From Rebecca billardiae RCC1528 (lineage: Eukaryota; Protista; Haptophyta): DNA of 64,000 bases. Each line of letters starts with the position of its first letter. Within the stretch, counting starts at the first letter, position 1. Positions 4,927 through 55,755 of this stretch are shown one piece after another. Location of the stretch: NCBI GenBank assembly GCA_965240325.2, contig OZ251247.1, forward strand, positions 434,001 to 498,000. Direction: 5' to 3'. A model generated the notes under the pieces. It was not told the DNA's origin, ran no database searches, and was given only the letters and a program-made list of their open reading frames with translations. A program made the position numbers and the translations under genes.

Positions 4927-4959
<33 letters not shown>

Positions 4960-5779: not shown

Positions 5780-5812
<33 letters not shown>

Positions 5813-6487: not shown

Positions 6488-6536
<49 letters not shown>

Positions 6537-24151: not shown

Positions 24152-25684
24152 TCATCCGAGCCACCAGCACTCTGGGCTGACCTCGTTCATGCGATCCGGT
24201 CTCCCGCTGCGCAAGTGGGGCAGCTGCCCGATGCGCGTTGGCGGCGTGCACGGCGACCCCACCGCCGCGGGAAGAGCGACACGACGTATGCTCAGCCCGA
24301 GGCCGAGCGCAGCCGATTGCTCGCCGCACGAGTACACGCTGCCGTCCGACGTCACGTACAGCGCTGTGTGACCGCCCATGGCGCAGCGCGCAACGCGGGT
24401 GTGCGCGAGAGCGTGCACGCATTCCGGGATGCGAACGTGCACGACGCCCGCAGCGATGCGAAGACCCCGCTCGCCGCTGCTGATGCGCCCAAACGTGTGC
24501 ACGCTGCCGTCTGCACCCAGCACAGCGCTGCTGTAGAGGCCAGCGCACGCGCGAACAGCGCGCACACCAGAGAGGGCGTCAATCCGCCTCGGCGCGAGTT
24601 GATCGCGCGTGTCTCCATGTCCGAGATTGCCAGACATGCCCTGCCCGAACGAGTACACCTCCCCCTCGCTGTCCACCACCAGGCTGTGCGTGTGGCCCGC
24701 GCTCACGTGCACGGTGTGCACGCCCGCTAGCGCCTCGATGCGCCTCGGCGTGCGCTGATCCTGCTGGCCGCCGTGGCCGAGACGGCCCTTGTAGCCCCAG
24801 CCGCACGAGTAGACGGCGCCATGTGCAGAGAGCAGTAGCGTGTGGAAGCCGCCCGCGGCCATCCCGCCCACGCGCACGCCATCCAGCGCCTCGAAGCGCG
24901 TCGGCTCCAACCGAGGCTGAATATCGCCGTGGCCGAGCTGGCCGCTGCGGTTGTCGCCCCAGCTGTACGCGCACCCAGCGGCGGTGAGCGCAAGGCTGTG
25001 GCTCCCAGCAGCCGAAATACTCACGATGGTGGCAGTACGCAGGTGGCGGATCAGCGCGAACGAGCTACGCTCCTCCATGTCCCCGAGCCCGAGCTCGCCG
25101 AAGCCGTTGTCGCCGCAGCCGTACACGGCGCCGGCCTCGCTCAGCGCGAGCAGGTGCCAGTGCCCAGAGGCCACCGCGACCACGCGCACGGCGCCCAGAG
25201 AGGTAACGCGTGCTGGCACGTGCACCTCCGGCCGGCCCGCGTGACCGATGGCGACGGGCGTTCGGTACTCCCCCGTGCCGTTCCCCTCGGCGCCCACCAC
25301 CTCCTCCTCGCCGCACGTGTGCAGCCCGCCCTCCGCGTCCACAAACGCGCTGAAGTCCATGCCGGCTGAGACCGGTGATGCGTGCGCGTGCGCACCCTCA
25401 AGCACGCGCTCGCGCACGAACAGCTCCTCCGCCCACGTGCGCACGCAGAAGGGCAGCGACGCCGGTAGAGCCCGCGCGTGCCCGCGCAAGCACACGCGCT
25501 CGCGCAGCGCGCGCTCGACCGCAGAGCACCCGCCGGGCGGCGCGGCGCGGAAGAGGCGCGCGGCGGCGTTCAGGCTCGCAAGGTCGCGCGGCGGCAGGAG
25601 TGAGACGATGCAGTCGAGCACCTCGGGTGGCAGGTCGTCAAGCCCGAGGCCACGAGAGGGTGCGTGCGTCGTGCTGATGGTCAT
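24152..25684 (-). CDS. F-box + RCC1-repeat protein, copy 1
   Basis: LDDLPPEVLDCIVSLLPPRDLASLNAAARLFR (F-box pattern), then repeated GxxHxLxLxxxGxVYSWGxNxxGQLGHG RCC1 units. Start chosen at MTIST by homology to the other copies. Confidence 0.85.
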   Translation of the reverse strand: MTISTTHAPSRGLGLDDLPPEVLDCIVSLLPPRDLASLNAAARLFRAAPPGGCSAVERALRERVCLRGHARALPASLPFCVRTWAEELFVRERVLEGAHAHASPVSAGMDFSAFVDAEGGLHTCGEEEVVGAEGNGTGEYRTPVAIGHAGRPEVHVPARVTSLGAVRVVAVASGHWHLLALSEAGAVYGCGDNGFGELGLGDMEERSSFALIRHLRTATIVSISAAGSHSLALTAAGCAYSWGDNRSGQLGHGDIQPRLEPTRFEALDGVRVGGMAAGGFHTLLLSAHGAVYSCGWGYKGRLGHGGQQDQRTPRRIEALAGVHTVHVSAGHTHSLVVDSEGEVYSFGQGMSGNLGHGDTRDQLAPRRIDALSGVRAVRACAGLYSSAVLGADGSVHTFGRISSGERGLRIAAGVVHVRIPECVHALAHTRVARCAMGGHTALYVTSDGSVYSCGEQSAALGLGLSIRRVALPAAVGSPCTPPTRIGQLPHLRSGRPDRMNEVSPECWWLG

Positions 25685-25954
25685 CGCTCTCGGCTCACGG
25701 GGCGCGCTGACGAAGGAAACTCTCGAGGGCGCCGAGGCCGAGTTGCACGACGAATTGCATGCTCGCTGCGCTCGCGGCGTGAGCCTTGACGAACGCACTG
25801 CGACGACGTGCGTGCGTGTTGCCATCACGTTCATTATTGGCGCTTTTCTTACGGGGGTAACAGAATACAGATTACTGATAAAGTACCGTAGTATTGGTTG
25901 TGCATGCGAGGCCCCAGGGAGGGCGTCAGTGCTGCTCACCACATCTGCGGCGCC

Positions 25955-26842
25955 ATGCCGTCGCCCGCCCGCCGCGCGGCGCTCGCGGCCCTCCTCGCCG
26001 CCGTCGCAGCGCCACCATGCACGCGTGGCCTCGACGAGTGGCACCTGGACCGCAGACGCGCGCAGAAGGTGCTCGTCGTGCACGTGGGCAAAACCGGCGG
26101 CTCCTCCGCAAGCTCATACCTCAAGCGGAACGGCGTGCCGCTGCACCGCGTGCACAGGCGGCCGATCACGCGCGCCGAGATCAACGCGGCGCGCGCGGTG
26201 ATCGTGCCCGTGCGCGATCCGCTCGCTAGGGCGGTGTCTGGCTTCAACTGGCGGCACACGCACCAGTTCCCGCCCACGCGCTTCGAGCGGGAGGAGCTGT
26301 TCAAGTGCTTCAGCCACCCGAATGAGCTGGCGCTGGCGTTGCTGCCGCCTCGCGGCGACAGCGGAGAGGGGGCGAGGGGCCATGCCACCGTCGACGTCAG
26401 CGAGCACTGCCGAGGCGTGGCGCGGCGCGGGCTCCACCCGGGCGTCGCCGAGGCCAACCAGACGCAGATGGGCATGGGCTGGGCCTACCACGTGGGAGAT
26501 ACAATCTCCCTGCTGGAGAGCGCCAAGGGGGTGCACGTGTACGCCGTGCACACGGACAGCCTGCAGGGTGACGCCATGGACATGTACAAGGCGCTGCTGC
26601 GCGACCGCACGCTCGGGCTGCAGGCGGGGCGCGGGCACGGTGCAAGGCACGCGGCCGCGCACGCTGCCGAGTTCCCCACGACGCACACCGGGCGGTACAA
26701 TGGCAGCGAGCGCGTAGTGACCGACGCGCGCGCACGCGAGGCGATGCGCGCGGAGCTCGTGGAGGACTACGCGATCATCGCGCGCGTCGAGCGACTGCAC
26801 GCGCGCACAATCGCGCGCGGCGCGTCGGAGTGCAGCCGCTAG
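25955..26842 (+). CDS. Sulfotransferase-family protein with N-terminal signal/anchor
   Basis: VVHVGKTGGSS (5'-PSB-like) and VPVRDPLARAVSGFNW (3'-PB-like) motifs. Hydrophobic N-terminus MPSPARRAALAALLAAVAA. Intronless. Confidence 0.7.
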   Translation: MPSPARRAALAALLAAVAAPPCTRGLDEWHLDRRRAQKVLVVHVGKTGGSSASSYLKRNGVPLHRVHRRPITRAEINAARAVIVPVRDPLARAVSGFNWRHTHQFPPTRFEREELFKCFSHPNELALALLPPRGDSGEGARGHATVDVSEHCRGVARRGLHPGVAEANQTQMGMGWAYHVGDTISLLESAKGVHVYAVHTDSLQGDAMDMYKALLRDRTLGLQAGRGHGARHAAAHAAEFPTTHTGRYNGSERVVTDARAREAMRAELVEDYAIIARVERLHARTIARGASECSR

Positions 26843-26936
26843 TAGCAGCTGCTCAGCCACATAACACCATCTGACCGTACGCGGCGCAGGATGCATGTGC
26901 TCGTCGCCGCGTACGACAGTCAGCTTCATGAGGCGG

Positions 26937-29574
26937 CACAGTGCCGGAAAACTGCTCAGGGTGACGTTTTAAGTTGTCCGCACCACTAGTCGAATCATCG
27001 GACAATTCTGAAGCGGTGCGCCTAAATTCGGCGCACCATAGGCGCGTCGAATCGTGGCACAGACCTTGGTAGCAGGCCACACCTGAGCGCGCTGCGCGCG
27101 CCGACGCGCGCTCGGCGCGGGCAAAAAATCATGCGCCGTTGGCGCATTACGCAGCCCTGCGCAGCGCTGTGCTCGAGCTCGGCGGCGGCGAAAGCGGGCG
27201 GGCGCACACGGCGGTGCCCGTGCGCGCTGCTCCGAGCGCAGCTGCGGCCACCCCGGCGGCATGCCGCCGGTCGAGGGCACGAAAACCGATTTTTCGGGAA
27301 AATGCAGAGCAGCGGCGCCCGAGCGCGCCCGAGCTCGTCGCAGCACAGTCTCCTGGTGGCTGCGCCCCGTGAAGCCACGCCACGCGGGGCGCTGGCGTGC
27401 GCGTGGCCTGCGCCCACCGTGCGCTGCCCGATCATGGCCGTCGACCGCTCCGAGCGCCTCACCACGCGTGCTCGAGCCCACCGATACTGACGCCCGAGCA
27501 CGGTGCCGGCAGCGCTCGCAGGTGGGCGTCGGAGAAAACACGCCGGCCGAACGAGCTTGAAGCGTCCGCCGCGACGCCAACGGCAGCGGACGACGTGCGC
27601 GCCACCTCGGCGCCAGTCGCCCAGCCCTTGCGCGGCGGTGCGGGCTCGCTCGTTCGCCGCCATCAGCTGCGCGCGCGCAGCCCGATCACTGCCCGCTGGT
27701 TCTGTTGTCGAGCAGCTGCGGCCTGCCACGCGCACTGCCGGACATTGAGCCACAGCGCGAGCACGCGCCTCGTCTGGCACGTGCGAGCACTCAGCATCGT
27801 GCGTGGCCACCATGACGCGCCCATCTGCGCCAGCAGCGATGAGCACGCCGCCGTTCAGCTCGCATCGGGCTCGCTCGCGACGCAGCAACGCGCGGCCGTA
27901 GCGGCAGCAGCGGCGCCGTCGAGCACGCGCAGCAAACAAATATGCAGCGCGGGCGAGTCGACGGTCTGGAAAATGCGCGATCACGCCACAGCAGGCTGGC
28001 AGAGCCCGCCCGAGCTGCAGCATGCCGTAGGTGCTGCCCCAAGCTCTCGACTGCCCGTAAGCGGCGGCATGTGCGGCGGCGCCGGCGGCGGCCATGCTGC
28101 CACGCCGTTGCGCGCCGCGGGGCGCCGTCGGCACCTCCGTGGTGAAGCGCACAGAGCTCGAGCCCACGGGGGCTGGCGACCGTCAAACCGACACCCCATG
28201 ACGCGGGGCTGCGTGCGCCAGCTGCGCGCACTCCGTGGGCCCACCTAGCCCGCTCGAGCAGCTCGCCTTGGGTGCGCGCAGCGGCTCGAGCACACTGGTA
28301 TGGGACGCCTGCCTGCGGTGCCGCCGAGCACATGCGGCCGACGGTCACTCAGCACGGGCGACTCGACGGCGGCGAGCAGGCGCGACGGCCTCGCCGCGCC
28401 GCGGAAAAGCCTGCCCGGGCTGCAGCACGCCGTAGGAGCAGCCCAGCGCCCTCCTCCGCCCTCAAGCTTCGGCGCGCGCAGCAGGCCCGGCGGCGGCCAT
28501 GCTGGCGTGCCCAAGCATGAAGATGGGCGCGGCCGGCCGCGCCGTCGCAAAGCGCGCAGAACTCGAGCTCGGGGGGGCGGACGGCCGCCAAACTGGCGCG
28601 GCAGGACGTGGCACTGCGTGCGCCAGCTGCGCGCACCCGCTGCGCCCGCGTGGCCCGTGCGAGCGCCGCGCCTCGAGCACACGCAGCTGCTCGACACAGC
28701 CACGGCAGTGTGGCTTGTGCGCGTGCACGTGATCAGTCTCAGCTCTGAGGCGCGCGCTCAGGAGGGCTGCGGCCGGGCCGAGCGCGATCTGCGCGGACGG
28801 TACAGCCTGGCGGCTCATGCCAGCCAGCCCAAAGCCCGCTCCGCCATCCGCGTCATGGCGCTCCAGCCTCTCGCGTGCTGCGCTGCAGCCGCGCTCGGCA
28901 AAGACGTCGCCCAGCCCGCCTTGCACGCGGCTGAGCAGTGGCAGCCAGGCGAAGCGTCGTCGCGGGCGAGGCTGCGCTGGGTGATGCGGCTCGGGTCGGT
29001 GGGCAAGTCGCACCCCGCCGTCGGTCGCCTCCACGCCTCAGGCTCGCTCGAGGTCAAAGACAACTGCGCGGCGCGGCGTTTGCGCGGGCGGGCCGCGGGC
29101 GTGGCGGGGTGTACGCGTGCAATGTCACAGCCTCCCACACAATGTCAGGAGGGTGAGACGCACCGCCAGCGGCACCCGCACACAATCCCACCCTGCGCGA
29201 GCCACCTGCCGTGTCGACTGAAGCATCAGGCTCGGGCGCAACCGCGGGCGGCGCATGCAAGAAGCTCGCGAAACGCACCGCGCGCGCCGTGAGGGCGAAA
29301 GGAGAGCACCCGTCAGGGCGGCGAGGAACTTGCCCAGCGCCACGCGGAAGACGACCCCAGCCCGCGTCGACGCATCGTCGGGCCCGCGAGCAGCCTCGTC
29401 GGTCTTCGCCGAGTAGATCGCGCCGCGAGCCGAGGCACCGCTCGTTTGAGGCTCCGTCCGCCGCGAAGTCGCGGCTTCCACCCGAGTTCCACTGTCCGGC
29501 CGAGACCGGATTCGCTGACTCGAGCTGCGGACCGTCGTCCGAAGCGTCACGGAAAATTCCAATCCGGCACTGTG
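26937..29574. mobile_element. Probable non-autonomous DNA transposon with CACAG termini (CMC/EnSpm- or Transib-like)
   Basis: Both ends read CACAGTGCCGGA-N12-GTGACG(T/C)TT, followed by further patchy inverted similarity (GTCCGCA..AGTC..GAATC). GG on both flanks. Internal imperfect ~400-bp-offset duplication (~27950-28270 vs ~28355-28690). No recognisable transposase. Confidence 0.6.
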
Positions 29575-29720
29575 GGGCAGAATCTGGCATATATGGGGAC
29601 GACGGCGAGGAGCGCTGATCCTGGTGTTTGTCTCTGCTGCTCGATCTGCCGCTACAGCTTGCTGACTCTGACGCCTGCCCGTTGCATACCACGTCGTTAA
29701 TATATATATATATATATATA

Positions 29721-31310
<1,590 letters not shown>

Positions 31311-32890
31311 TCCTCACCGTGTCCGTGTCGCCAGGCCAGTCGGCGTCGAACCATTCGTCTACCCAGTCCATCGTCACGCCAAGCCCGAGTGCGCCCGAGC
31401 GCCAACCGCACGCGTGCACGGCGCCGTCCGCTGTGACGTACAGCGCGTGGGTCTCAGCCAGCGCGCAATCGAGCACACGCACTGAGCCGAACGCCTGCAC
31501 GCGTGCGGGCAGAAAGAGCCGCCTGCTTTTCACAGACGCAGCGAGCTGGCCATGCCTGTTGTTCCCAAACGTGTGCACGCTGCCGTCTACGCCCAGCATC
31601 GCGCTGCTGCCCACGCCTGCGCACGCGCGCACCACGCACACACCCTCCAGCGCCTGGATACGCATAGGCAGCGGCGAGGTGCCCACTCCGTACGAGTACA
31701 CCGCCCCCTCGCTGTCCACCACCAGGCTGTGGTCACTGCCCGCGCTCACGTGCACGGCGCGCACGCCCGCGAGCGCCTCGATGCGCCTCGGCGTGTGCTG
31801 ATCCTCCTCGTCGCCGTGACCGAGAGGGCCAAAGTTGCCAGCGCCGCACGAGTACACGACGCCGTGTGCAGAGAGCAGTAGCGTGTGTCGGCCACCCGCG
31901 GCCAACCCGCCCACGCGAACGCCGTCCAGCGCCTCGATGCGCGTCGGCTCCCAGCGGTCCTCCTCGTCGCCGTGGCCGAGCTGGCCGTAGTAGTTGTGGC
32001 CCCAGCTGTACACACAGCCAGCGGCGGTGAGCGCGAGGCTGTGGAACTCGCCGGCCGCGATGGACACGATGGGCTCGTGCCGCAGCGACTCGCCAAGGGC
32101 AAAAGAGCGCAGATCATCCTTGTGCCCGAGCCCGAGCTGGCGGTACCCGTTGTCGCCGCAGCCGTACACGGCGCCTGCCTCACTCAGCGCGAGCAGGTGG
32201 CGAGGGCCAGCGGCCACCGCGACCACGCGCACCGCGGAGAGCGAGGCCACGCGCGTGGGCACGTGCATTGCCGTCAGAGCCGTCAGAGCCGAGTGGCCGA
32301 TCGCTATGGGCGGGACGTACGCGCCCGTCTTGTGCCCGTCGTCGTCCACCTCCTCCTCCTCGCCGCACGTGTGCAGCCCGCCCTCCGCGTCCACAAACGC
32401 GCTGAAGCGGTGGCCGGCCGCCACGGCAGATGCGTGCGCGCACGCCAGCTCGAGCACGCGCTCACGCGTACAGAGCTCCTCCACCCAGGTGCAAACGCCT
32501 GCGGGTAGCACGGACGGCAGCGCGCGAGCGTGTCCCCGCGCGCGCGCGCGCTCGCGCAGCGCGTGCTCGACCGGCGAGCGGCCGCCGGGGGCGCCGCGGA
32601 AGAGGCGCGAGGCGGCGTTGGCCGCGGCGATGTCCATCGGCGCCAGGCCTGCCATCAGAACGCGCTCGATCAACTCTGCAGGCAAGTCAGCGAGGCTTGC
32701 CGGCGCCATCTCTCGCAGGCGAGCTAGTGGCGGTTGGTCATGAACAGTGTGAGCTCGTTGTGTGCCTGCTCAGAACGAGGACGGACGGTTGGTCACTGGT
32801 CAGGGAGCTAGCTGCAAGCTGGATACGGCGCACGACTGTCGATTTGACTCCATTTGACGGGCGCTGAGTTGACAGTAGTTGGTTCGACAG

Positions 32891-34513
32891 TTAAGCAAGG
32901 TATATAGTCCGGTAGTGCGTACACTGAGAGTGAGCTGTCAGGCTCACAAGTCCCCGGGGCTGGTCAGGAGCCGAGCAGCTAGCCAACATCAGTCGAGTAG
33001 TGCCAGTGGCCGCATGCGGAGCATCGGCGCCCTGACCGCCGACAGGCCCCTGGCACGCAGTCGGCCACGCCACGCGCGGAAGCTGTGCAATGCACGTGGG
33101 CGTCTGAACGATGTCGGTCACGTTAAAAAAGTCGCCGTCGAGCGAGGCCATCGTTATGCCAAGCCCGAGCGCGCCTGCACGCAGACCGCACGCGTGCACG
33201 GCGCCGTCCGCTGTGACGTACAGCGACTGGGTCTCAGCCAGCGCGCAGTCCAGCACACGCACTTAGCCGAACGCCTGCACGCGCGCCGGCAAAAAGAGAC
33301 CCCTGCTGTTCCAAGGCGCAGCGAGCTGGCCACGGCTGTTGTCCCCAAACGTGCGCTCGCTGCCGTCCGCGCCCAGCACCGCGCTGCTGCAATGGCCTGC
33401 ACACGCGCGCACGATGCGCACACCGGCCAGCGCCTCGATACGCACTGGCAGCGGCTGCGAGCGCATGTCGCCGTGGCCGAGGGCACCACTGGCGCCCGAT
33501 CCGAACGAGCGCACAACCCCGTCGCTGTCCACCACCAGGCTGTGCGTGTAGCCCGCGCTCACGTGCACGGCGCGCACGCCCGCGAGCGCCACGATGCGCC
33601 TCGGCGTGTGCTGAGGCTGCTTGTCGCCTTGGCCGAGACGGCCAAACCTGCCGTTGCCACACGAGAAGACGGCACCGTGTGCGGAGAGCAGCAGCGTGTG
33701 CTCGGCCCCTGCTGACAGTCCGCCGATGCGTACGCCGTCCAGCGCCTTGATGAGTGTCGGCTTCAGCCGCTCCTTCCTGTCGCCGTGGCCGAGCTGGCCG
33801 CACATGTTGTCGCCCCAGCTGTACACACAGCCAGCGGCGGTGAGCGCGAAGCTGTGGCAGCCGCCCACCGAGATGGCCGCGACGGGCTCGTGCCGCAGCG
33901 ACTCGCCGAGGGCAAAGGAGCGCCGCTTCTCCCTGTCCCCCAGCCCCAGCTGGCCGCACTCGTTGTCGCCGCAGCCGTACACGGCGCCGGCCTCGCTCAG
34001 CGCGAGCAGGTGGCGGTAGCCAGCAGCCACGGCGACCACGCGCACCGTGCTGAGCGAGGCGACTCGAACCGGGATGAGCGACGCATGCGATCCTGCGTGG
34101 CCCGTCGCACTGGGCACTCGCACCTCGCCCGTCGGCCACCCGTCCTCGTCCTCCACCTCCTCCTCGCCGCACGTGTGCAGCCCGCCCTCCGCATCCACAA
34201 ACGCGCTGAAGCGGAGACCGGCCGCCACGGCAGATGCGTGCGCGCACGCCAGCTCGAGCACGCGCTCACGCGTACAGAGCTCCTCCACCCAGGTGCAAAC
34301 GCCTGCGGGTAGCACGGACGGCAGCGCGCGAGCGTGTCCCCGCGCGCGCGCGCGCTCGCGCAGTGCGTGCTCGACCGGCGAGCGGCCGCCGGGGGCGCCG
34401 CGGAAGAGGCGCGAGGCGGCGTTGGCCGCGGCGATGTCCATCGGCGCCAGGCCTGCCATCAGAACGCGCTCGATCAACTCTGCAGGCAAGTCAGCGAGGC
34501 TTGCCGGCGCCAT
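32891..34513 (-). pseudogene. F-box + RCC1 copy 3, premature TAA at 33263-33265 (416-aa truncated product)
   Basis: AFG*VRVLDC where copy 2 has AFGSVRVLDC (TCA>TAA). The frame continues to 32891. Confidence 0.8.
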
Positions 34514-34694
34514 CTCTCGCAGGCGAGCTAGTGGCGGTTGGTCATGAACAGTGTGAGCTCGTTGTGTGCCTGCTCAGAACGAGGACGGACGGTTGGTCAC
34601 TGGTCAGGGAGCTAGCTGCAAGCTGGATACGGCGCACGACTGTCGATTTGACTCGATTTGACGGGCGCTGAGTTGACAGTAGTTGGTTCGACAG

Positions 34695-41958: not shown

Positions 41959-42131
41959 GATGAGGGCCTGGGTACCGCTAATGGCCGCCTCGATGAGGTG
42001 CGGCAACGCGCCCCTCACCTGCCTGCGCCGGTCTGTTTTATTTTGTGGCGGTGTCTTTGTGCAGTGTTTGGATGGCGTCAATCACGCCAACCAAGTGTGC
42101 ACGTGAAAACATAGTAAACTGTACATCCGCC

Positions 42132-44243: not shown

Positions 44244-44482
44244 GCCGGGTCCAGCCGCGCCGCAACCAGCAGCAGTAGTCGTCAATGTTCTTGATCACGA
44301 CTTAGTCTGGACGAATGCATATATATGTACAACACACACACAGTATAGTTGATGACGAAAGTACACTCGCACAGCCCGCCTCATGACATGTCGGCTTCAC
44401 CGTAGCAGCGGGCAATGCCCACCCAATGTCACGTGCCTCACAGTGGGCGGCGGGTCCAGCCACCGCCCAACGCGCCGCGCAG

Positions 44483-45994
44483 TCAGCAGCGCCCCAGCAC
44501 GCGCGGCAGCCCGTCGATCAGCATCGGCAAGCCGTCTCCGCTCCGCAGCCCTGGCGGCAGCTGCTCCTCGGGGTCGGCCGCACTCACGCCCTGGCCCAGG
44601 GCAGCGCCCACACGCCCAGCTGAGTACACGCGCCCGCCCGCCGTCACGAAGAGCGAGTGCCTGCCGCCAAACGCGCAGCCGGTTATCCGCTCTTGCACAA
44701 GGACCCGACTGTGAGCGGGACACTGCGACCCCGCCGGTGCCCCTGACCCAAGCTGGCCGTACTCGTTGCGCCCAAACGTGTGCACGCTGCCGTCCGCGCA
44801 CACCACCGCGCTGCTGCGATCGCCAGCGCACGCGCGGACCGCGCACATGCCTGCAAGGGCCTCGATGCACGCGGGCGCGAAGCGTCGGGAGCTGGCAGCG
44901 TGTCCAGCCTCGGTATGGGCACTGTCGCCAAATGCATGCACGCCACCCGCTGCGTCCACCACCAGGCTGTGCGTGTAGCCCGCGCTCACGTGCACGGCGC
45001 GCACGCCAGCGAGCGCCTCAATGCGCCTCGGCGTGTGCTGATCCTGATCGTGTCCGTGGCCGAGACGGCCCCTGTGGCCCCAGCCGCACGAGTAGACGGC
45101 GCCCTGCGCAGAGAGCAGTAGCGTGTGGCAGTCGCCCGTGGAGATGCCCCCCACGCGCACGCCGTCCAGCGCCTCGATGCGCGTCGGCTCCCTCCGCTCC
45201 TTCTTGTCGCCGTGGCCGAGCTGGCCGCCGAGGTTGTCGCCCCAGCTGTACGCGCAGCCAGCGGCGGTGAGCGCGAGGCTGTGGTAGCCGCCCGCGGCGA
45301 TCGCGACGGCGGATTCGCGCGCGAGCGGATATACCTCGACGAACGAGCGCCGCTCCTCCCTGTCCCCCAGCCCCAGCTGGCCGCTTTCGTTGTCGCCGCA
45401 GCCGTACACGGCACCGTCGTCACTCAGCGCGAGCAGGTGGTGGTCGCCACCCGCCACCGCAACCACGCACACCGCGGAGAGCGAGTCAACGCGCATCGGC
45501 ACGAGCACCGGCGGGACGTCTGTGTGGCCGATCGATATGTGCGCCCGATACTCGACCATCAGCTCCCCGTCCTCGTCCACCTCCTCCTCCTCCACCTCAC
45601 CGCACGTGTGCAGCCCGCCATCCGCGTCCAAAAACGCGCTGAAATGATAGCCGGCCGTCACCGCTGATGCGTGCGCGCGCGCGCGCGCCAGCACACCTTC
45701 GCGCGCAAAGAGCTCCTCCGTCCAGCTCCGCACGCCCGCAGGCAGCTCGGTCGGCAGCGCGCGATCGTGCCCGCGAGCACAAGCGCGCTCGCGCAGCGCG
45801 TGCTCGACCGGCGAGCGGCCGCCAGGCGCGCCGCGGAAGAGGCGCGAGGCGGCGTTGGCGGCGGCGAGGTCCAGCGGCGACAGTCCACATGAGAGGACGC
45901 GCTCGATGATCTCCGCGGGCAGGTTGCCGAGACGCGTTGCCGCCGTCGCCGAGCGCGCAGCGCGCTGGTGGTGCGTCGTCGCGGTGGAGGTCAT
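44483..45994 (-). CDS. F-box + RCC1-repeat protein, copy 8
   Basis: Intact ORF from MTSTATTHHQ with F-box and RCC1 motifs. Confidence 0.88.
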   Translation of the reverse strand: MTSTATTHHQRAARSATAATRLGNLPAEIIERVLSCGLSPLDLAAANAASRLFRGAPGGRSPVEHALRERACARGHDRALPTELPAGVRSWTEELFAREGVLARARAHASAVTAGYHFSAFLDADGGLHTCGEVEEEEVDEDGELMVEYRAHISIGHTDVPPVLVPMRVDSLSAVCVVAVAGGDHHLLALSDDGAVYGCGDNESGQLGLGDREERRSFVEVYPLARESAVAIAAGGYHSLALTAAGCAYSWGDNLGGQLGHGDKKERREPTRIEALDGVRVGGISTGDCHTLLLSAQGAVYSCGWGHRGRLGHGHDQDQHTPRRIEALAGVRAVHVSAGYTHSLVVDAAGGVHAFGDSAHTEAGHAASSRRFAPACIEALAGMCAVRACAGDRSSAVVCADGSVHTFGRNEYGQLGSGAPAGSQCPAHSRVLVQERITGCAFGGRHSLFVTAGGRVYSAGRVGAALGQGVSAADPEEQLPPGLRSGDGLPMLIDGLPRVLGRC

Positions 45995-46254: not shown

Positions 46255-47740
46255 TCACCAGCGCCCCAGCACGCGCTGCAGCCCGTCGATGAGCATCGGC
46301 AAGCCGTCTCCGCTCCGCAGCCCTGGCGGCAGCTGCTCCTCGGGATCGGCCGCACTCACCCCCTGGCCGAGGGCAGCGCCCACACGCCCAGCTGAGTACA
46401 CGCGCCCGCCTGCCGTCACGAAGAGCGAGTGCCTGCCGCCAAATGCGCAGCCGGTTATCCGCTCTTGCACAAGGATCCGACTTAGAGCGGGGCACTGCGA
46501 CCCCGCCGGTGCCCCTGACCCAAGCTGGCCGTGCCCGTTGTGCCCAAACGTGTGCACGCTGCCGTCCGCGCACACCACAGCGCTCTGCGCTGCTGTCATC
46601 GCCCGCGTACGCGCGCACTGCGCGCACGCCCGCCAGTACAGCAATGCGCCTAGGCACGCGCTCGGATGATACGCCGCCGAGGCCAAGCTGTCCTTGGCGC
46701 CCATACCCGAACGAGTGCACCCCACCCGCCGTGTCCACTACCAGGCTGTGCAGCCTGCCCGCGCTCACGTGCACTGCGCACACGCACGCGAGCGCCTCTA
46801 TGCGCCTCGGCGTGTGCTGATCCTGCTGGTCGCCGTGGCCGAGCCGGCCAAACCAGACAAGGCCGCACGAGTAGACGGCGCCACGCGTCGTGACCAGCGG
46901 CGTGTGCTCACAGCCGGCCGCCACTCCACCGATGCGCACGCCGTCCAGCGCCTCGATGCGCGTCGGCTCCCACCGGTCCTTCCTGTCGCAGTGGCCGAGC
47001 TGGCCGCACATGTTGCTGCCCCAGCTGTACGCACACCCAGCTGCGGTGAGCGCGAGGCGGTGGTCGTTGCCCGCGGCGATCACGACGACGAGCTCGCGCG
47101 CGAGCGGGTAGACCTCGACGAACGAGCGCCGCGTCTCATCGTCCCCCAGCCCGAGCCGGCCAGAGCGGTTGTTGCCGCATGCGTACACGGCGCCGGCATC
47201 GCTCAGCGCGAGCAGGTGGCCAATGCCCGCGACCACGGAGCGCACGCGCACCGCGGAGAGCGAGGCCACGCGCGTCGACAAGCACACGTTTGGCGCATCT
47301 GGGTGGCCGATGGACGCGTGCGGCCGATACTCGCCCGTCCACTGGAAGCGATAATCCAGCACCGCCTCCTCGCCGCACGTGTGCAGCCCGCCCTCCGCGT
47401 CCACAAACGCGCTGAAGTTGTTGCCAGCCGCCACGGGAAATGCGTGCGTGGACGTGAGCTCGAACACGCACTCACGTGCAAGCAGCTCCGCCGTCCACGT
47501 CGACGAACTCGCGGGCAGGGTCGGCGGCAGCGCGCGCTCGTGCCCGCGCGCGCGCGCGCGCTCGCGCAGCGCGTGCTCGACCGGCGAGCGGCTACCGGGC
47601 GCGCCACGGAAGAGGCGCGCTGCGGCGTTGGCGGCGGCGAGGTGTCGAGGCGTGTCAAGTGCGTGAAGAATGCGCTCGATGACCTCGGCGGGCAGGTCAG
47701 CCAGCCGCGGCGCCGCCGTCGCCGCGTCTTGCGTCGTCAT
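46255..47740 (-). pseudogene. F-box + RCC1 copy 9, frameshift (7-nt insertion) at ~46580-46586
   Basis: Homology runs in the 46169-47923 frame until AYAGDDSSA, then continues in the 46255-46725 frame (SAVVCADG...LGRW). Confidence 0.82.
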
Positions 47741-47948: not shown

Positions 47949-49442
47949 TCAGCCAGAGGGAGAGGCCAGCGGGGCACCCATGCGCGGCAGCTGCTGGATG
48001 CGCGTGGGCGTCCGCAGCAACCCTGCACGGGCGGCCATGCTCACTCCTTGGCCGAGCGCGGCCGATTGCTGGCCGCACGAGTACACGCTGCCGTCAGCTG
48101 TCACAAACAGGGCGTGGGTGTCGCCGAGCGCGCACCCGACCACGTCCACGTGGGCGAGCGCGCCGACCCGCCCACTGGACGCAGACACCGCGGTCGTGGT
48201 GTGCCCCAGCAGGCCGTACCGGTTGTCCCCAAACGTGTGCACGCTGCCGTCCGCGCCCAGCACCGCGCTGCCGCCCATGCCCGCGCACGCGCGCACGGCG
48301 CGCACGCCCGCCAGCGCCGGAATGCACCTGGGCACGCACTCGAATGGTTCGCAGCCAGGGCCAAGCTGCCCAGCATAGTGCCCATACCCGAACGCGTGCA
48401 CCCCACCCGCCGCGTCCACCACCAGGCTGTGCTCACAGCCCGCGCTCACGTGCACGGCGCGCACGCCCGCGAGCGCCTCGATGCGCCTCGGCGTGTGTTG
48501 ATGCTGCTCGTCGCCGTGGCCGAGACGGCCGTAGTAGCCATCGCCAAACGAGTAGACGGTGCCGTCGACAGAGAGCAGTAGCGTGTGGTAACGCCCCACT
48601 GACATGCCGCCCACGCGCACGCCGTCCAGCGCCTCGATGCGCGTCGGCTCCCACCGCTGCTCCGTGTCGCCGTGGCCGAGCTGGCCGAGCTGGTTGTCGC
48701 CCCAGCTGTACGCACACCCAGCGGCGGTGAGGGCGAGGCTGTGGGCGGCACCCGCGCCGATGCACGCAACGAGCGTGCCCCTCATGACGTCGATCGGAGC
48801 GAACGACCGTCGCGTCCGCGTGTCGCCCAGCCCGAGCTGGCCGTTGTCGTTGTCGCCGCAGCCGTACACGGTGCCAGCATCGCTCAGCGCGAGCAGGTGG
48901 GCACAGCCTGAGGCCACGGAGCACACGCGCACTGCGCAGAGCGAGGCAATGCGCGTCGGCACGAGCACCTCGCTCATACGGACGTGGCCTAGAGCCACGT
49001 GAGGACCGTACTCGCCCGTGAACCAATGCCCATCCTCGTCCAGCTCCCCCTCCTCGCCGCACGTGTGCAGCCCGCCCTCCGCGTCCACAAACGCGCTGAA
49101 GCTATGGCCGGCCGCCACGGGAGACGCGTGCTCGCTAGCAAGCACGAGCACGCTCTCGCGTGCAAAGAGCTCCTCCGTCCAGCTGCGCACGCCCGCCGGC
49201 AGCTCGGTCGGCAGCGCGCGCGCGTGCCCGCGAGCACGAGCGCGCTCGCGCAGCGCGTGCTCGACCGGCGAGCGGCCGCCGGGCGCGCCGCGGAAGAGGC
49301 TCGAGGCGGCGTTGGCCGCGGCGAGGTCCGGGGGCGCCAGGCCAGCGGAAAGAAGCCGCCCGATCAACTCCGCGGGCAGGTCGGCGAGACGCGTCGCCGC
49401 CGTCGCCGAGCGCTGGTGGTGCGTCGTCGTGGTGGAGGTCAT
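47949..49442 (-). CDS. F-box + RCC1-repeat protein, copy 10
   Basis: Intact ORF. N-terminus almost identical to copy 7. Confidence 0.88.
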   Translation of the reverse strand: MTSTTTTHHQRSATAATRLADLPAELIGRLLSAGLAPPDLAAANAASSLFRGAPGGRSPVEHALRERARARGHARALPTELPAGVRSWTEELFARESVLVLASEHASPVAAGHSFSAFVDAEGGLHTCGEEGELDEDGHWFTGEYGPHVALGHVRMSEVLVPTRIASLCAVRVCSVASGCAHLLALSDAGTVYGCGDNDNGQLGLGDTRTRRSFAPIDVMRGTLVACIGAGAAHSLALTAAGCAYSWGDNQLGQLGHGDTEQRWEPTRIEALDGVRVGGMSVGRYHTLLLSVDGTVYSFGDGYYGRLGHGDEQHQHTPRRIEALAGVRAVHVSAGCEHSLVVDAAGGVHAFGYGHYAGQLGPGCEPFECVPRCIPALAGVRAVRACAGMGGSAVLGADGSVHTFGDNRYGLLGHTTTAVSASSGRVGALAHVDVVGCALGDTHALFVTADGSVYSCGQQSAALGQGVSMAARAGLLRTPTRIQQLPRMGAPLASPSG

Positions 49443-49527: not shown

Positions 49528-50553
49528 CAAGGGAGGTCCGGGCCGGGAGCTCCCAGCGAGCGGCCAGCGCGACGTCACTGCAAAGTTTTCCCTGAGCGCC
49601 GGGCGGCGGCAGCGGCGAGGGCGAGTGCTCCGCTGGCGGGGCGCGACAGCGCTGCGGGCGCGGATGTGCCCGCAGAGCCGGCGCGCGCGGACGGGCTGTT
49701 GCGGGAGAGCACTCGGCGCCCTCCTGCGCCGCGCGTCTTGCGCCACGCCTCTTTCGCCTCGGCTCAGGGCAGCGCGCACATGCGCGCCGCGTCAAGGCCA
49801 GCCTTGCCTGCGCCGCAGCCGACCGCGCGCGCGCCGTGCGCGGCGTGGTCGGGAAGGAACGGGCGCTGCCGCGGGGCGAGGTGGCGACACCATGCGCGCA
49901 CGCCATGCCGCCCCGCCACGCCTTGACGAGCGTGTCGTCGGTCCGTTTGCATGCCTCTTTGACTTGTCACAAATGGTGTGCACGGCCTCGCGGTCGTGAC
50001 CCTTGTCAGGACGATCATTGAGACGCAGAACAGTGCCAGACGGGCGCGCGGGCTACTCTTACATGGATATTCATCACCGTGTGGTCAAGTAGAGGTGCTG
50101 GATGCGACGCTTTCCTCGCGCTGATGCTCTTTCATCATCTTCTTCGAGCTCAGGTCCGTGGCTTGGCACGACAAGTGATCAGCACTCGTCAACAGCTGTG
50201 CAGATCTATTGCCGTGCCCTTTCGCGGCATCACGGGGCGGCATGGCGTGCGCGCATGGTGTCGCCACCTCGCCCCGCGGCAGCGCCCGTTCCTTCCCGAC
50301 CACGCCGCGCACGGCGCGCGCGCGGTCGGCTGCGGCGCAGGCAAGGCTGGCCTTGACGCGGCGCGCATGTGCGCGCTGCCCTGAGCCGAGGCGAAAGGGG
50401 CGTGGCGCAAGACGCGCGGCGCAGGAGGGCGCCGAGTGCTCTCCCGCAACAGTCCGTCCGCGCGCGCCGGCGCTGCGGGCACATCCGCGCCCGCAGCGCT
50501 GTGCCCCGTCGCGCTGGCCGCTCGCTGGGAGCTCCCGGCCCGGACCTCCCTTG
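49528..50553. mobile_element. Foldback non-autonomous transposon, P-element-like (CAAGG ends, 7-bp TSD)
   Basis: Inverted arms 49528-49915 and 50233-50553; the left arm has a ~70-bp extra segment. TSD GTAGTCG at 49521-49527 and 50554-50560. Empty paralogous site with a single GTAGTCG at 44275-44281. Confidence 0.9.
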
Positions 50554-50756: not shown

Positions 50757-52244
50757 TCAGCAGCGCCCCAGCACGCGCGGCAGCCCGTCGATCAGCATCG
50801 GCAAGCCGTCTCCGCTCCGCAGCCCTGGCGGCAGCTGCTCCTCGGGGCCGGCCGCACTCACCCCCTGGCCGAGGGCAGCGCCCACACGCCCAGCTGAGTA
50901 CACGCGCCCGCCTGCCGTCACGAAGAGCGAGTGCCTGCCGCCAAACGCGCAGCCGGTTATCCGCTCTTGCACACGGATCCGACTGGGAGCGGGACACTGC
51001 GACCCCGCCGGTGCCCCTGACCCAAGCTGGCCGTGCCCGTTGCGCCCAAACATGTGCACGCTGCCGTCCGCGCACACCACAGCGCTGCAGCATGAGCCAG
51101 CGCACGCGCGGACCGCGCACATGCCTGCAAGGGCCTCAATGCACGCGGGGGCGACATAGCCGCACGGCTCACCATACCCGAGCTCCCCAAAGCTGCCAGA
51201 GCCACACGAGTACGCGGCACCTTCTGCGTCCACCACCAGGCTGTGCTCACCGCCCGCGCTCACGTGCACGGCGTGCACGCCAGCGAGCGCCTCGATGTGC
51301 CTCGGCGTGGGCTGATGCTGCTCGTCGCCGTGGCCGAGACGGCCAAAGTAGCCGCAGCCGCACGAGTAGACGGCGCCATGCGCGGAGAGAAGCAGCGTGT
51401 GCTCAACGCCCGCGGCCACGCCACCCACGCGCACGCCGTCCAGCGCCTCGATGCGCGTCGGCTCCCACCGCTCCTTCTTGTCGCCGTGGCCGAGCTGGAC
51501 GCCGAGGTTGCAGCCCCAGCTGTACGCGCACCCAGCGGCGGTGAGCGCGAGGCTGTGGTAGCCGCCCGCGGCGATCGCGACGACGGATTCGCGCGCGAGC
51601 GGGTAGACCTCGACGAACGAGCGCCGCTCCTCCCTGTCCCCCAGTCCCAGCTGGCCGCTTTCGTTGTCGCCGCAGCCGTACACGGCACCGTCGTCACTCA
51701 GCGCGAGCAGGTGGGAGTCGCCTGCTGCTACCGCAACCACGCACACCGCGGAGAGCGAGGCGACGCGCATCGGCACGAGCACCGGCGGGACGTCTGTGTG
51801 GCCGATCGCTATGTGCGCCCGAGACTCGACCATCAGCTCCCCGTCCTCGTCCACCTCCTCCACCTCCTCCTCGCCGCACGTGTGCAGCCCGCCCTCCGCG
51901 TCCAAAAACGCGCTGAAATGATAGCCGGCCGTCACCGCTGATGCGTGCGCGCGCGCGCGCACCCGCACACCCTCGCGCGCAAAGAGCTCCTCCGTCCAGC
52001 TCCGCACGCCCGCCGGCAGCTCGGTGGGCAGCGCGCGATCGTGCCCGCGAGCACGAGCGCGCTCGCGCAGCGCGTGCTCGACCGGCGAGCGGACGCCGGG
52101 CGCGCCGCGGAAGAGATTCGAGACGGCGTTAAGAGCGGCAAGGTCACGCGGCCGGCCGACCGCGAGCAGGATGCGCTCGATTACCTCGGCGGGCAGGTCC
52201 GAAAGCCGAGGCGCCGCTGTCGCCGCCGCGCCTTGCGTCGTCAT
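50757..52244 (-). CDS. F-box + RCC1-repeat protein, copy 11
   Basis: Intact ORF from MTTQGAA. Middle and C-terminus close to copy 8. Confidence 0.88.
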   Translation of the reverse strand: MTTQGAAATAAPRLSDLPAEVIERILLAVGRPRDLAALNAVSNLFRGAPGVRSPVEHALRERARARGHDRALPTELPAGVRSWTEELFAREGVRVRARAHASAVTAGYHFSAFLDAEGGLHTCGEEEVEEVDEDGELMVESRAHIAIGHTDVPPVLVPMRVASLSAVCVVAVAAGDSHLLALSDDGAVYGCGDNESGQLGLGDREERRSFVEVYPLARESVVAIAAGGYHSLALTAAGCAYSWGCNLGVQLGHGDKKERWEPTRIEALDGVRVGGVAAGVEHTLLLSAHGAVYSCGCGYFGRLGHGDEQHQPTPRHIEALAGVHAVHVSAGGEHSLVVDAEGAAYSCGSGSFGELGYGEPCGYVAPACIEALAGMCAVRACAGSCCSAVVCADGSVHMFGRNGHGQLGSGAPAGSQCPAPSRIRVQERITGCAFGGRHSLFVTAGGRVYSAGRVGAALGQGVSAAGPEEQLPPGLRSGDGLPMLIDGLPRVLGRC

Positions 52245-52392: not shown

Positions 52393-52960
52393 GCGTTCGG
52401 ATGGTCCAGCCAGCACTCGTCCCAGCGCTGCCGGCTGCGGCGTGTCGTGCAGTCCGCGTCGGCAGCGGCCGGCTCTGCTCCATGATCGTCCAGCTGGCAT
52501 CGAACCGTCTTGCTGCACGTCCGCTGATGTTCGCCTCGGATGCGGCCGCGCGCCGCCGCTCGAGCTCGCCCTTCATCGTTGGGCGCGACGAAAAGCGCCG
52601 CCTTGCTGTTGAGGCGGGCGTGCCTTCGCCTCGGCCTTTGGGTGATGGTGTGCTCGCGACGTCGGCGTTGTCGGGGCGGTCGAGCCGGCGGGCAAAGGGA
52701 GGCCGTCAAAGTCGACGAGCGTTCGCTCGCGCGACGCGAGCGCGGGCGTTCGGATGGTCCAGCCAGCACTCGTCCCAGCGCTGCGGCGTGTCGTGCGCGG
52801 TCCGTCCGGGCAGCGGCCGGCCCGCCGCAGAGCCGAAGGCCAGCTCTGCACGGACAGGCACTGCTCCATGATCGTCCAGCTGGCATCGGACCGTCTCGCT
52901 GCACATCCGCTGACGTTCGCCTCGGATGCGGCCGCGCGCCGCCGCTCGAGCTCGCCCTTC
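52393..52960. repeat. Imperfect direct duplication (~52393-52574 and ~52746-52960)
   Basis: Shared CGTTCGGATGGTCCAGCCAGCACTCGTCCCAGCGCTGC...GCTCGAGCTCGCCCTTC. Confidence 0.8.
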
Positions 52961-54252
52961 GGCTGTCGGCACTAGACAGGGACGATGGCAGCTCAGCATG
53001 AGATGACAATGTGATGCCGCAGCTCGAGCACGTGCAGGGCGCGCGGGTGGCTTGCCAACCGCGTGCTATGACCGGCGTTGGCCTTGCCAGCTGCATTACC
53101 TGTATGACAACGCGCCGACCTCGAGCGCACGGTCGCGCGGGGCCGAACTGAACACAATATCGGCAGCACTCTCACGCATACAAGCCGCCTCACACAGTTG
53201 TCAACGCAGCCGGCCCGGCACGACTCGACGGGCACGACTGCCACGACTCACGAGCGGGGGCTCCGCTCCGAGTTGCCTCCTTGTCCCGAATGCTGTGGTG
53301 CCCGCATGATCCTTTGTCCGATGGGCCGGCCGCGCCCGCCCGGGACGAGCGGGGCAGAACAGCCTAGTGATGGTACTACGACGACAGTCGACACGCTGCC
53401 AGCAGCCCACCCGTTCAGGCGACCCGACCTAACTCACACGAGTCCGGGGCGGAATTATGCGTACCCGGTACGCATAATTCCGCCCGGACACAGTGGCGCG
53501 CAGTGCGCGCCACTGCGAGATGAGCGCCAAGACCCGTCGCGCCGCCCGTCGCGCGTGTCGTCTGCGGCGGCTGGCATGGCCGTGGCGACGGCGCATCGCG
53601 GTCATCATTTGAAGAACTGCTCAAGGGACATCCGGCTCTGCAGAAGTGTGCCGCATCAGCCTCTTCTCCGCTTCTGAGCACTACTCGACTGCCACCGACC
53701 GAGAAGGCCAAACGTTGCCTACCGCGCCCGCTTCTGTCCGCGACATGCGCTTGAGTCGTGGCTTGAACCGGTGCGCATGGGGCTGGCATATATGTTCCGT
53801 CTCTTCACGGGAAGCCCGCGTCTTGCCCTTGCAGCACATCCGGTGCGATGAAGCGACGGCGCAAGCACCGCCAGCCGCAACGGCATGCAGACGCATGGAC
53901 GTACGCAGTGACCATGGGCGCAGAAGAGGCTACGGAGGCGAGCCATGAGCGTCAGAAGGGGCCAGTAGGTGCGACCAGACGTACCCGCCTCGCGCGCCGT
54001 CGCCCAGCCTTCGTCTTCACTGCGGCGCGCACGCGGGGCCGGAGGCCGCGCACGCCACTGGCAGGGCCACTTTACCGGCGCGCAGCCGGAAGCCATTTCA
54101 ACTGAAATGTTTTCCGCGAGCGCCGCGGGCCAACCCCCAGATCCGACCCGACAGCGGGCGCCTGAACGGGTGGAATGCCGCCGACCACCCATCCATCAGA
54201 CTCCAAAGTGCTGCCGACACACACAGTGGCATGCATCACCACGTGGCAGTGA

Positions 54253-55755
54253 TCAGCCAGAGGGAGAGTGAGAGGCTAGCGGGGTGTCGACACGTGGCAG
54301 CTGCTCGATGCGCGTGGGCGTCCACAGCGGCCCCGCACGGGCGGCCATGCTCATGCCGTGGCCGAGCGCTGCCGAGTGCTGGCCGCACGAGTACACACAT
54401 CCGTCCTCTGTCACGTACAGCGCGTGAGCACTGCCGACCGAACAGCTGGTTACACGTGCGTGCTCCAGCGCGTGCACACGCTCCGGCGCCGTCACCTCCA
54501 TGGGCCTGCGCCCCAGCCCCAGCTGGCCACTGCGGTGGTCCCCGAACGTGTGCACGCTGCCGTCCGCGCCCAGCACCGCGCTGCCGAAGGAGCCAGCGTA
54601 CGCTCGCACTGCGCGCACGCCCGCCAGCGCCGCAACGCGCCTAGGCATGCGCTCGGATGATAAGCCGCCGAGGCCAAGCTGTCCATCGCGCCCATACCCG
54701 AACGAGTGCACCCCGCCCGCCGCGTCCACCACCAGGTTGTGCCCACTGCCGGCGCTCACGTGCACGGCGCGCACGCCCGCGAGCGCCTCGATGCGCCTCG
54801 GCGTGAGCTGACGCTGCTGGTCGCCGTGGCCGAGCACGCCACCCAAGCCATCGCCCCATGAGTAGACAGCACCACGTGCGGTCAGCAGTAGCGTGTGCGC
54901 ACGCCCTGCTGAAAGTCCGCCGATGCGCATGCCGTCCAGAGCCTCGATGCGAGTCGGCTCCCACCGGTCCTTCGTGTCACCATGGCCGAGCTGGCCCCCG
55001 TCGTTGCAGCCCCAGCTGTACGCACACCCAGCGGCGGTGAGCGCGAGGCTGTGGTAGAAGCCAGCGGCGATGCCGACAGTGGCCTCACCCGCGAGCGCCT
55101 GAACGTGCGCGAATGCACGCCTCTTGTCGTCATCACCCAGCCCAAGCTGGCCGTACTCGTTGTCGCCGCAGCCGTACACGGTGCCGGCATCGCTCAGCGC
55201 GAGCAGGTGGCCCCAGCCTGCGGCCACAGATCGCACGCGCACCGCGGAGAGTGAGGCCACGCGCGTCGGCCGACACAGCACCGCCACATCGGGATGGCCC
55301 AGTGCAGCGGGTGCTCGATAATACTCGCCAGTCAGCAGCCCGGTGTTCTCGTCCTGCGCCGTCTCCTCACCGCACGTGTGCAGCCCGCCCTCCGCGTCCA
55401 CAAACGCGCTCAGCCAGCGGTGCAAGAGCTCCCCACCGGCAGCGACGGGCAGCGCGTGCATCTGCGCCAGATCGATCACACGCTCGCGCGCAAACAGCTC
55501 CGCCGTCCACGTCGACGCACACGCCGGCAGCTCGGTGGGCAGCGCGCGATCGTGCCCGCGAGCACGAGCGCGCTCGCGCAGCGCGTGCTCCACCGGCGAG
55601 CGGCAGCCGGGCGCGCCGCGGAAGAGGCGCGAGGCGGCGTTGGCGGCGGCGAGGTGTCGAGGCGAGTCAAGTGCGAGCAGGATGCGCTCGACGACCTCGG
55701 CGGGCAGGTCAGCCAGCCGCGGCGCCGCCGTCGCCGCGACTTGCGTCGTCGTCAT
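54253..55755 (-). CDS. F-box + RCC1-repeat protein, copy 12
   Basis: Intact ORF from MTTTQVAA with F-box and RCC1 motifs. Confidence 0.88.
   Translation of the reverse strand: MTTTQVAATAAPRLADLPAEVVERILLALDSPRHLAAANAASRLFRGAPGCRSPVEHALRERARARGHDRALPTELPACASTWTAELFARERVIDLAQMHALPVAAGGELLHRWLSAFVDAEGGLHTCGEETAQDENTGLLTGEYYRAPAALGHPDVAVLCRPTRVASLSAVRVRSVAAGWGHLLALSDAGTVYGCGDNEYGQLGLGDDDKRRAFAHVQALAGEATVGIAAGFYHSLALTAAGCAYSWGCNDGGQLGHGDTKDRWEPTRIEALDGMRIGGLSAGRAHTLLLTARGAVYSWGDGLGGVLGHGDQQRQLTPRRIEALAGVRAVHVSAGSGHNLVVDAAGGVHSFGYGRDGQLGLGGLSSERMPRRVAALAGVRAVRAYAGSFGSAVLGADGSVHTFGDHRSGQLGLGRRPMEVTAPERVHALEHARVTSCSVGSAHALYVTEDGCVYSCGQHSAALGHGMSMAARAGPLWTPTRIEQLPRVDTPLASHSPSG

Follow-up and report, generated by a model that had tools for sequence, protein, structure and literature searches.

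In the 64,000-nucleotide stretch of the genome of the haptophyte Rebecca billardiae RCC1528 that we analysed (contig OZ251247.1, positions 434,001 to 498,000; hereafter the window), 12 homologous genes lie in tandem, all on the minus strand, between window positions 24152 (stop codon of the first copy, c01) and 55755 (ATG of the last, c12). We think it probable, with some reserve, that they form a birth-and-death array of putative substrate receptors of the Skp1–cullin–F-box (SCF) type, in which an F-box-like N-terminal module is joined to a diversifying RCC1-like propeller. Purifying selection acts on the propeller scaffold and on the N-terminal module, and some 13–22 residues in the s2-s3 and s4-s1' loops of the propeller outpace silent sites between paralogues. 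In such a receptor, a three-helix F-box-like motif would dock on SKP1, and a conserved two-helix linker would give the propeller a rigid attachment in the manner of Fbw7, Cdc4 and beta-TrCP. Each paralogue would then bind a different partner on its variable face and pass that partner to a cullin-RING ligase for ubiquitylation, with viral, transposon-derived, mating-related and endogenous proteins as the candidate target classes. New copies arise by tandem duplication; unequal crossing-over or gene conversion then exchanges tracts of several hundred bases among them, and some end as pseudogenes.

A tblastn search of the window with one copy, read together with a listing of the open reading frames (ORFs), recovered all of the 12 co-oriented, intronless paralogues that a preliminary description, made from the sequence alone, had placed at 24152–55755. 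The copies are 490–540 codons long and lie in DNA with a GC content of 60–83 % (2-kb windows). Nine are intact and three (c03, c04 and c09) are disrupted, so that the 12-gene receptor array first described includes three pseudogenes that had been missed. The ‘near-invariant framework’ attributed to the family exists at the level of the repeat motifs, which are the only framework positions to be almost fixed, but not of the whole protein: identity to c12 is just 53–69 %, and outside the loops the copies differ by a non-synonymous divergence (dN) of 0.28 and a synonymous divergence (dS) of 0.51. The loop columns hold seven to nine different residues among the 12 copies, whereas the flanking motif columns hold one or two, a pattern far beyond chance. 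The framework motifs and the three lists of loop residues given in the preliminary description agree letter for letter with alignment columns 206–207, 275–278 and 328–331, and the length-variable acidic insert that it had noticed after TCGE is the s4-to-s1 loop of blade 1.

The assignment of the propeller domain stands far above threshold. From approximately residue 100 to the C-terminus, all four copies scanned against Pfam match RCC1 models with E-values of 1e-56 to 1e-72, scoring 224–244 bits for PF25390 (cut-off 150) and 188–224 bits for PF00415 (cut-off 21.7; E 1e-56 to 1e-67). The AlphaFold2 (AF2) model of c12, built on 26 family sequences (pLDDT 90.4, pTM 0.90), arranges 28 strands in seven four-stranded blades, with a C-terminal strand that closes the ring. 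Scores above the Pfam gathering thresholds and a seven-bladed beta-propeller of four-stranded blades thus identify c12 residues 100–485 (54301–55458, minus strand) as an RCC1-like domain. UVR8 is the best match of the propeller both by sequence (E 2e-110) and by fold, followed by HERC, RPGR and RCC1, and Foldseek assigned a probability of 1.00 to the matches with UVR8, HERC3/4 and RCC1. The hypervariable residues are located in the s2-s3 loops, which carry the GxxH motif, and in the s4-s1' loops, which carry GxNxxGQLGxGDxxx.

For the codon analysis, loop sites were fixed beforehand from the repeat motif as two residues of GxxH and three of GxNxxG in each blade, giving 32 codons. By the NG86 method, dN at these codons was 1.16, against a dS of 0.51 in the rest of the propeller. 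A tree-free comparison of loop dN with the silent divergence of the codons within eight positions on either side, which is immune to tree errors, gave a median ratio of 2.6; the ratio exceeded 1 in 66 of 66 pairs, and reached 3.2–4.5 in the youngest informative pairs (c08/c11, c02/c03 and c02/c04). Because the GC content at third codon positions (GC3) of these genes is 85 %, we also fitted the GY94-F3x4 codon model, in our own code and with separate trees for three segments of the gene; its M0 likelihood and kappa reproduce those of IQ-TREE. Under this model, the dN/dS ratio (omega) of the loop codons was 1.90 in blades 1–3 (p 1e-4), 7.75 in blades 4–5 (p 2e-20) and 0.97 in blades 6–7 (not significant), and the remaining sites of the three segments had an omega of about 0.26 (0.25–0.28). 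Restriction to the nine intact genes left the result unchanged (loop omega 2.20, 8.88 and 0.93, respectively). When no sites were preset and relative branch lengths were fixed, model M2a was favoured over M1a in all three segments (likelihood ratio statistics 34.4, 100.6 and 13.0), with approximately 9–10 % of sites assigned an omega of 3.7–9.8 in blades 1–5.

Amino acid change in the loops thus outruns silent change, most strongly in blades 2–5, and this suggests a binding repertoire under diversification; the loops of blades 6–7 look neutral. The result depends in part on how the silent rate is treated. With a free silent rate at the loop codons, the fit preferred a rate 1.9-fold higher than elsewhere, the pooled loop omega was 1.18 and no longer significant, and only blades 4–5 stayed above 1 (omega 5.3, p 3e-4). 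In our view, most of this drop comes from saturation at codons with multiple base differences, because 76 % of the differing codon pairs at selected sites carry two or three base changes, versus 40 % elsewhere. The diversifying loops proposed in the preliminary description are thus borne out by the preset-site omega values of blades 1–5 (1.9 and 7.8) and by the preference for M2a in all three segments, but the preset loop sites of blades 6–7 look neutral, and under a free silent rate only blades 4–5 remain significantly above 1.

An excess of amino acid change over silent change could also be produced artificially, by gene conversion that homogenizes the scaffold, by misaligned loops, by GC-biased gene conversion or by a codon bias that lowers dS. 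In its favour, the genes are evident mosaics of recombined sequence (see below), their GC3 is high, and the fit prefers a raised silent rate at loop codons; nevertheless, we consider this explanation very improbable. Silent divergence 1–10 codons from the loops is no lower than further off, with values of 0.29, 0.47, 0.38, 0.33, 0.35 and 0.40 at distances of 1, 2, 3, 4–6, 7–10 and more than 10 codons from a loop site, and the fraction of same-residue loop codons that use different codons (0.27) equals the background (range 0.21–0.30). With silent divergence beside the loops at background level, neither an older coalescence of the loop regions nor a local mutation hotspot can account for the pattern. 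Misalignment is countered by the G, H and N columns on either side of the main sites, which are invariant and free of gaps. The F3x4 codon model, the segment-specific trees and the tree-free pairwise tests agree with one another, and the match of our M0 likelihood to that of IQ-TREE likewise argues against an artefact.

GC-biased gene conversion can be ruled out as the driver, because it would shift GC3 in the opposite direction to that seen: the selected codons are less GC-rich, with a GC3 of 66 % versus 86 % in the rest, and A and T are commoner at every codon position, a composition that fits rapid turnover. The selected codons seem not yet to have reached the extreme GC equilibrium of the genome.

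A per-site scan of 472 sites, with branch lengths and kappa fixed per segment, identified 23 with omega above 1 at p<0.05 (14 at p<0.01), and 22 of the 23 are in the propeller. When the propeller residues were classed from the secondary structure of the model as strand or as one of four loop types, these sites fell in the s2-s3 loops (7 of 20 sites) and the s4-s1' loops (15 of 112), with none among the 76 sites of the opposite s1-s2 and s3-s4 loops and none among the 163 strand sites (Fisher p 2.8e-5 against the opposite loops and 4e-11 against all other propeller sites). All 13 sites with an M2a posterior above 0.95 lie in the same two loop types. In a beta-meander, consecutive hairpin loops alternate between the two faces, and the s2-s3 and s4-s1' loops therefore share one face. 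Rather than being scattered over the structure, a distribution that the preliminary description had named as counting against its proposal, the selected propeller sites are thus found 22 of 22 times on a single face.

Homology with UVR8 confirms this placement. The two variable residues of GxxH (x1 and x2) align with UVR8 W233/R234, W285/R286 and W337/R338, and x3 aligns with the tryptophan of the WGxxxxG loops (the UVR8 W250 and W302 positions). The dimer interface of UVR8 includes the tryptophan triad W233/W285/W337, W94 and the arginines R286 and R338 (PMC4501546), so that the selected positions are homologous to interface residues, and the GxxH loops do lie on the face of the UVR8 GWRHT sites, as had been supposed. 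The residues at the selected sites are enriched in aromatic (19 % versus 10.5 %) and acidic (15 % versus 9 %) side chains, in line with the aromatic- and charged-rich composition first noticed. The cleanest of these sites, with invariant and ungapped flanks, are alignment columns 206, 277, 312, 328, 331, 363, 364, 380, 384 and 417; less secure are the sites within the blade 1 acidic insert and those close to gaps in blades 5–7.

Ahead of the propeller stands an 89-residue helical module that is conserved across the wider family. In c12 it contains an F-box-like three-helix motif (residues 14–46; 55618–55716, minus strand) that includes an LP motif, has AF2 helices at residues 19–28, 32–41 and 43–46, and matches the F-box model PF12937 below its cut-off, at E 0.002–0.03. 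This is followed by a two-helix linker (residues 54–99; 55459–55596, minus strand; AF2 helices 54–65 and 83–99), which also figures in the Foldseek matches and is likewise conserved in the wider family. Of the four window copies scanned over their full length, three match PF12937 at E 1.5e-4 to 0.03, with 14–22 bits against a cut-off of 24.3; the scan of the fourth, c02, listed no F-box match, and its N-terminal module was included in a further scan of 23 N-termini from across the family. In that set, 17 have a PF12937 match with E≤1 (lowest E 4.8e-11), and the LP motif and hydrophobic pattern are near-invariant in the family. A profile of the 23 N-termini searched against all PDB sequences placed FBXO4, cyclin F, FBXO31, FBXW7, FBXO22, FBXL5 and FBXO3 at the top, with E-values of 0.008–0.09 and each aligned at its own F-box. 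A model of the module alone (pLDDT 89) found the Skp1 complexes of Fbw7, FBG3, FBXO42, Fbs1, FBXO31, FBXW8 and FBXO3 as its top Foldseek matches, and the match with Fbw7 (probability 0.90, TM score 0.59, E only 0.24) spans both the F-box and the helical linker. With an omega of 0.23, the module is under purifying selection.

Taken together, profile and fold comparisons indicate that the N-terminal module is probably an F-box with a rigid linker. The F-box claimed in the preliminary description is thus supported as an F-box-like module by profile, fold and selective constraint, but is sub-threshold in every window copy tested. A search of 1.84 billion representative proteins with the module profile returned 573 hits with E≤1e-3, 166 of them with E≤1e-10; full-length members have 470–550 residues. 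The hits come from metagenomes and transcriptomes and have uninformative names. Judged by this profile, the module is family-specific and widespread.

The array proteins might instead have nothing to do with ubiquitin ligases: the module could be merely F-box-like and serve oligomerization or localization, with the propeller acting as a stand-alone binder or as an exchange factor of the RCC1 type. The sub-threshold scores and the weak fold-search E-values leave room for this, as does the fact that many RCC1-like proteins, including UVR8, RCC1 and RPGR, the best propeller matches, work without ubiquitin ligases. We nonetheless judge it unlikely, as two independent approaches, by sequence profile and by fold, both gave Skp1-bound F-box proteins as top matches, with the alignment falling on the F-box itself; in addition, PF12937 is matched at up to E 4.8e-11 elsewhere in the family, and the LP motif and hydrophobic pattern are kept. 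Furthermore, an F-box and an RCC1-like propeller do operate together as an SCF receptor in mammals, where FBXO24 binds CUL1, SKP1 and RBX1 and has MIWI as a ubiquitylation substrate (PMC10932545).

The copies in the array have exchanged sequence. In a tree of the N-terminal segment, c07 groups with c10 and c09 with c12, whereas in a tree of the C-terminal segment c07, c08, c09 and c11 form a clade with 100 % support; the segment trees thus conflict with strong support. Sliding windows show c07 to be 96–100 % identical to c10 over the first 120 or so codons and 48–87 % thereafter, with a similar pattern between c02 and c03. Copy c09 is c12-like at its N-terminus and in blades 5–6, and is 93–100 % identical to c08/c11 over its last 120 codons. 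Such conflicting trees and tracts of identity imply that unequal crossing-over or gene conversion has moved sequence between the copies.

Outside this genome, the best relative has 53 % identity and is present as a single copy on contigs of 67–70 % GC from another sample (L001, 153–1703, from Logan accession ERR14847148, and L002), which suggests a related GC-rich organism that lacks a local array at that locus. The protein databases yielded no close hits, so this genome is probably not represented in them. With 12 copies, three of them disrupted, and no outside relative closer than this, the array has the features of a lineage-specific tandem expansion with pseudogenes. Positive selection in the recognition domain coincides with purifying selection on the F-box module, subject to the free-silent-rate result described above.

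Several observations weigh against a diversifying family of SCF receptors. To the failure of any tested window copy to attain the Pfam gathering score for any F-box model, to fold-search E-values of at least 0.24 (TM score at most 0.59) throughout and to the loss of significance under a free silent rate outside blades 4–5 must be added that a quarter of the copies (3/12) are broken, and that none of the ten gene products looked up by exact sequence was present in the protein collection. Recombination within the three segments could inflate the site tests, and the positive sites at 161, 162, 177, 393–395 and 445 lie in loops near gaps, where the alignment is less certain. Finally, four clusters of environmental proteins at 90 % identity (P0123, P0137, P0127 and P0124) showed no enrichment of differences in the two loop types (Fisher p 0.23–1); the differences are spread over the strands and both loop faces, often in two haplotype-like patterns. 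The hypervariability is therefore, so far, a matter of divergence between paralogues of one genome.

Neutral birth-and-death evolution, or ‘genomic drift’, offers another account of the array. Under such a process the family would expand and decay but undergo no adaptive diversification, and the loops would be unconstrained, quickly saturating surface residues; the F-box superfamilies of plants have been explained in this way (PMC3030570). The pseudogenes, the loop omega of about 1 in blades 6–7, the non-significant pooled omega under a free local silent rate and the lack of loop-focused variation in the environmental clusters all fit. Drift is harder to reconcile with the loops of blades 4–5, where omega was 5–9 under every model tried, with the preference for M2a in each segment, and with loop dN two to four times the neighbouring silent divergence even in the youngest pairs. 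Moreover, the scaffold and the F-box module have an omega of 0.21–0.26, and this purifying selection means that the intact genes are being maintained. Drift alone is, in our view, not a likely account of the array, and we continue to favour a tandem array of putative receptors with a diversifying propeller.

The architecture itself is not new. The preliminary description knew of no F-box–RCC1 proteins, and at that level it was mistaken, since FBXO24 has the same order of an N-terminal F-box followed by an RCC1-like propeller. FBXO24, however, is a single conserved gene without a tandem array and with no hypervariable loops reported, and it is absent from the best 30 Swiss-Prot structural matches of the c12 model; the likeness is one of architecture. 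An evolutionary parallel is offered by the F-box families of Caenorhabditis and plants, in which the F-box is under purifying selection and the substrate-recognition domain under positive selection, and for which immune and drift explanations have both been offered, the immune role being largely unproven (PMC8120010, PMC8665587, PMC3030570). Those families share with the array a lineage-specific tandem expansion and birth-and-death evolution with pseudogenes. Their recognition domain is FBA/FTH, Kelch or LRR, in contrast to the RCC1 propeller of the array. In the array, moreover, selection falls blade after blade on the same pair of loop positions, and the genome is that of an alga with very high GC content.

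Fbw7, Cdc4 and beta-TrCP resemble the array proteins in having an F-box, a rigid linker and then a propeller with a substrate-binding top face, and they are the best fold matches of the module, over 89–99 aligned columns, although these matches are weak (E 0.24, TM score 0.59). They differ in that their propeller is of the WD40 type and in being single conserved genes that recognize phosphodegrons. The plant UV-B receptor UVR8, compared here together with other RCC1-like domains (the HERC2 RLD, RCC1 and RPGR), shares the fold and the use of one face, and the variable positions of the array are the exact homologues of the W and R of its GWRHT motifs and of its WGxxxxG tryptophan. UVR8 lacks an F-box, and the array lacks the conserved tryptophan triad. 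A UV-B photoreceptor of the UVR8 type can be ruled out, as the triad and interface-arginine positions are hypervariable, with seven to nine residues among the 12 copies; what is shared is fold and face, not photoreceptor function.

A full-text literature search combining RCC1, F-box and haptophyte found nothing relevant, and the Diacronema lutheri genome paper mentions neither F-box nor RCC1. What is new is that three things come together: the diversifying domain is an RCC1 propeller, selection returns to the same two loop positions from blade to blade, and the host is an alga. Debate continues over what the large, fast-evolving F-box families of nematodes and plants are for, and the array adds a clean case from a distant lineage. 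Because the fold is regular and the selected residues occupy the same two loop positions on one face, the binding surface is predictable and could be engineered.

Haptophyte-type algae contribute heavily to marine primary production and are infected by giant viruses. The immune, antiviral or non-self role proposed in the preliminary description goes beyond the present observations. If the targets of the array are viral or parasitic, it would give a first handle on innate immunity in these organisms. A bolder version, which we find rather doubtful but worth stating, is a genome-wide, germline-encoded repertoire of dozens to hundreds of F-box/RCC1 receptors, their faces diversified by selection and recombined between paralogues by gene conversion, that would detect and send proteins of giant viruses, parasites or transposons to the proteasome. 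If true, this would be an innate immune system based on ubiquitin ligases and built on a propeller scaffold. Even otherwise, the family amounts to a naturally occurring collection of RCC1-propeller binders, and the joint action of recombination and selection on tandem receptor arrays can be modelled on it.

The individual copies, all on the minus strand, differ in state and ancestry. The first two in window order are c01 (24152–25684), which is intact, has 510 residues and matches RCC1 at E 5e-59 and the F-box-like model at E 1.5e-4, and c02 (31237–32709), which is intact with 490 residues and has a short deletion in blade 5. Copies c03 (32891–34513) and c04 (34695–36317) are interrupted by an in-frame TAA at codon 417 (33263–33265 in c03 and 35067–35069 in c04), and in c03 homology goes on past the stop. 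Intact copies c05 (36647–38152; 501 residues) and c06 (38439–40055; 538 residues) follow, the latter being the most divergent member, with an insert in blade 7. The intact mosaic c07 (40459–41958) has an N-terminal module that is 96–100 % identical in nucleotide sequence to that of c10 and a C-terminus like those of c08, c09 and c11. Copy c08 (44483–45994) is intact and is the closest relative of c11 (dS 0.13). Next to it, c09 (46255–47740) is disrupted by a one-nucleotide frameshift after codon 385 (approximately 46584–46586) and is a mosaic of c12-like and c08/c11-like parts. The remaining copies, c10 (47949–49442; 497 residues), c11 (50757–52244; 495 residues) and c12 (54253–55755; 500 residues), are intact, and c12 served as the reference for the structure model.

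Copies c03 and c04 form a tandem duplication (32891–36317) with a period of 1804 nt, 98 % identity and a dS of 0.02. Their parent already carried the TAA, so that it was a pseudogene that was duplicated and the array still duplicates regardless of function; the dN/dS of this pair is approximately 0.7, as expected under decay.

The spacers of the array hold further repeats. A perfect palindrome at 29720–31311 consists of two arms of 709 nt, 100 % complementary and 174 nt apart, with a self-complementary simple-sequence centre; the final 75 nt of c02 lie inside one arm, and the palindrome carries two short RCC1 fragments (29899–30146 and 30885–31132). A genuine foldback, a scar left by breakage or an artefact of long-read assembly could each explain it. 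The spacer between c10 and c11 contains a 277-nt inverted repeat (49646–49922 and 50226–50502; 98 % complementary, 303 nt apart) that may be a small terminal-inverted-repeat element. Three larger gaps (26100–29700, 42100–44400 and 52400–54200) contain no RCC1 remnants, and the ORFs in the gaps at 26–30, 42–44, 49–50 and 52–53 kb have no Pfam match; these ORFs are probably spurious products of the high GC content, or else represent unknown sequence. Upstream of the array, at 2224–6783 on the plus strand, lies an ORF of 1520 residues with a cytochrome b5 domain (E 1.7e-9).

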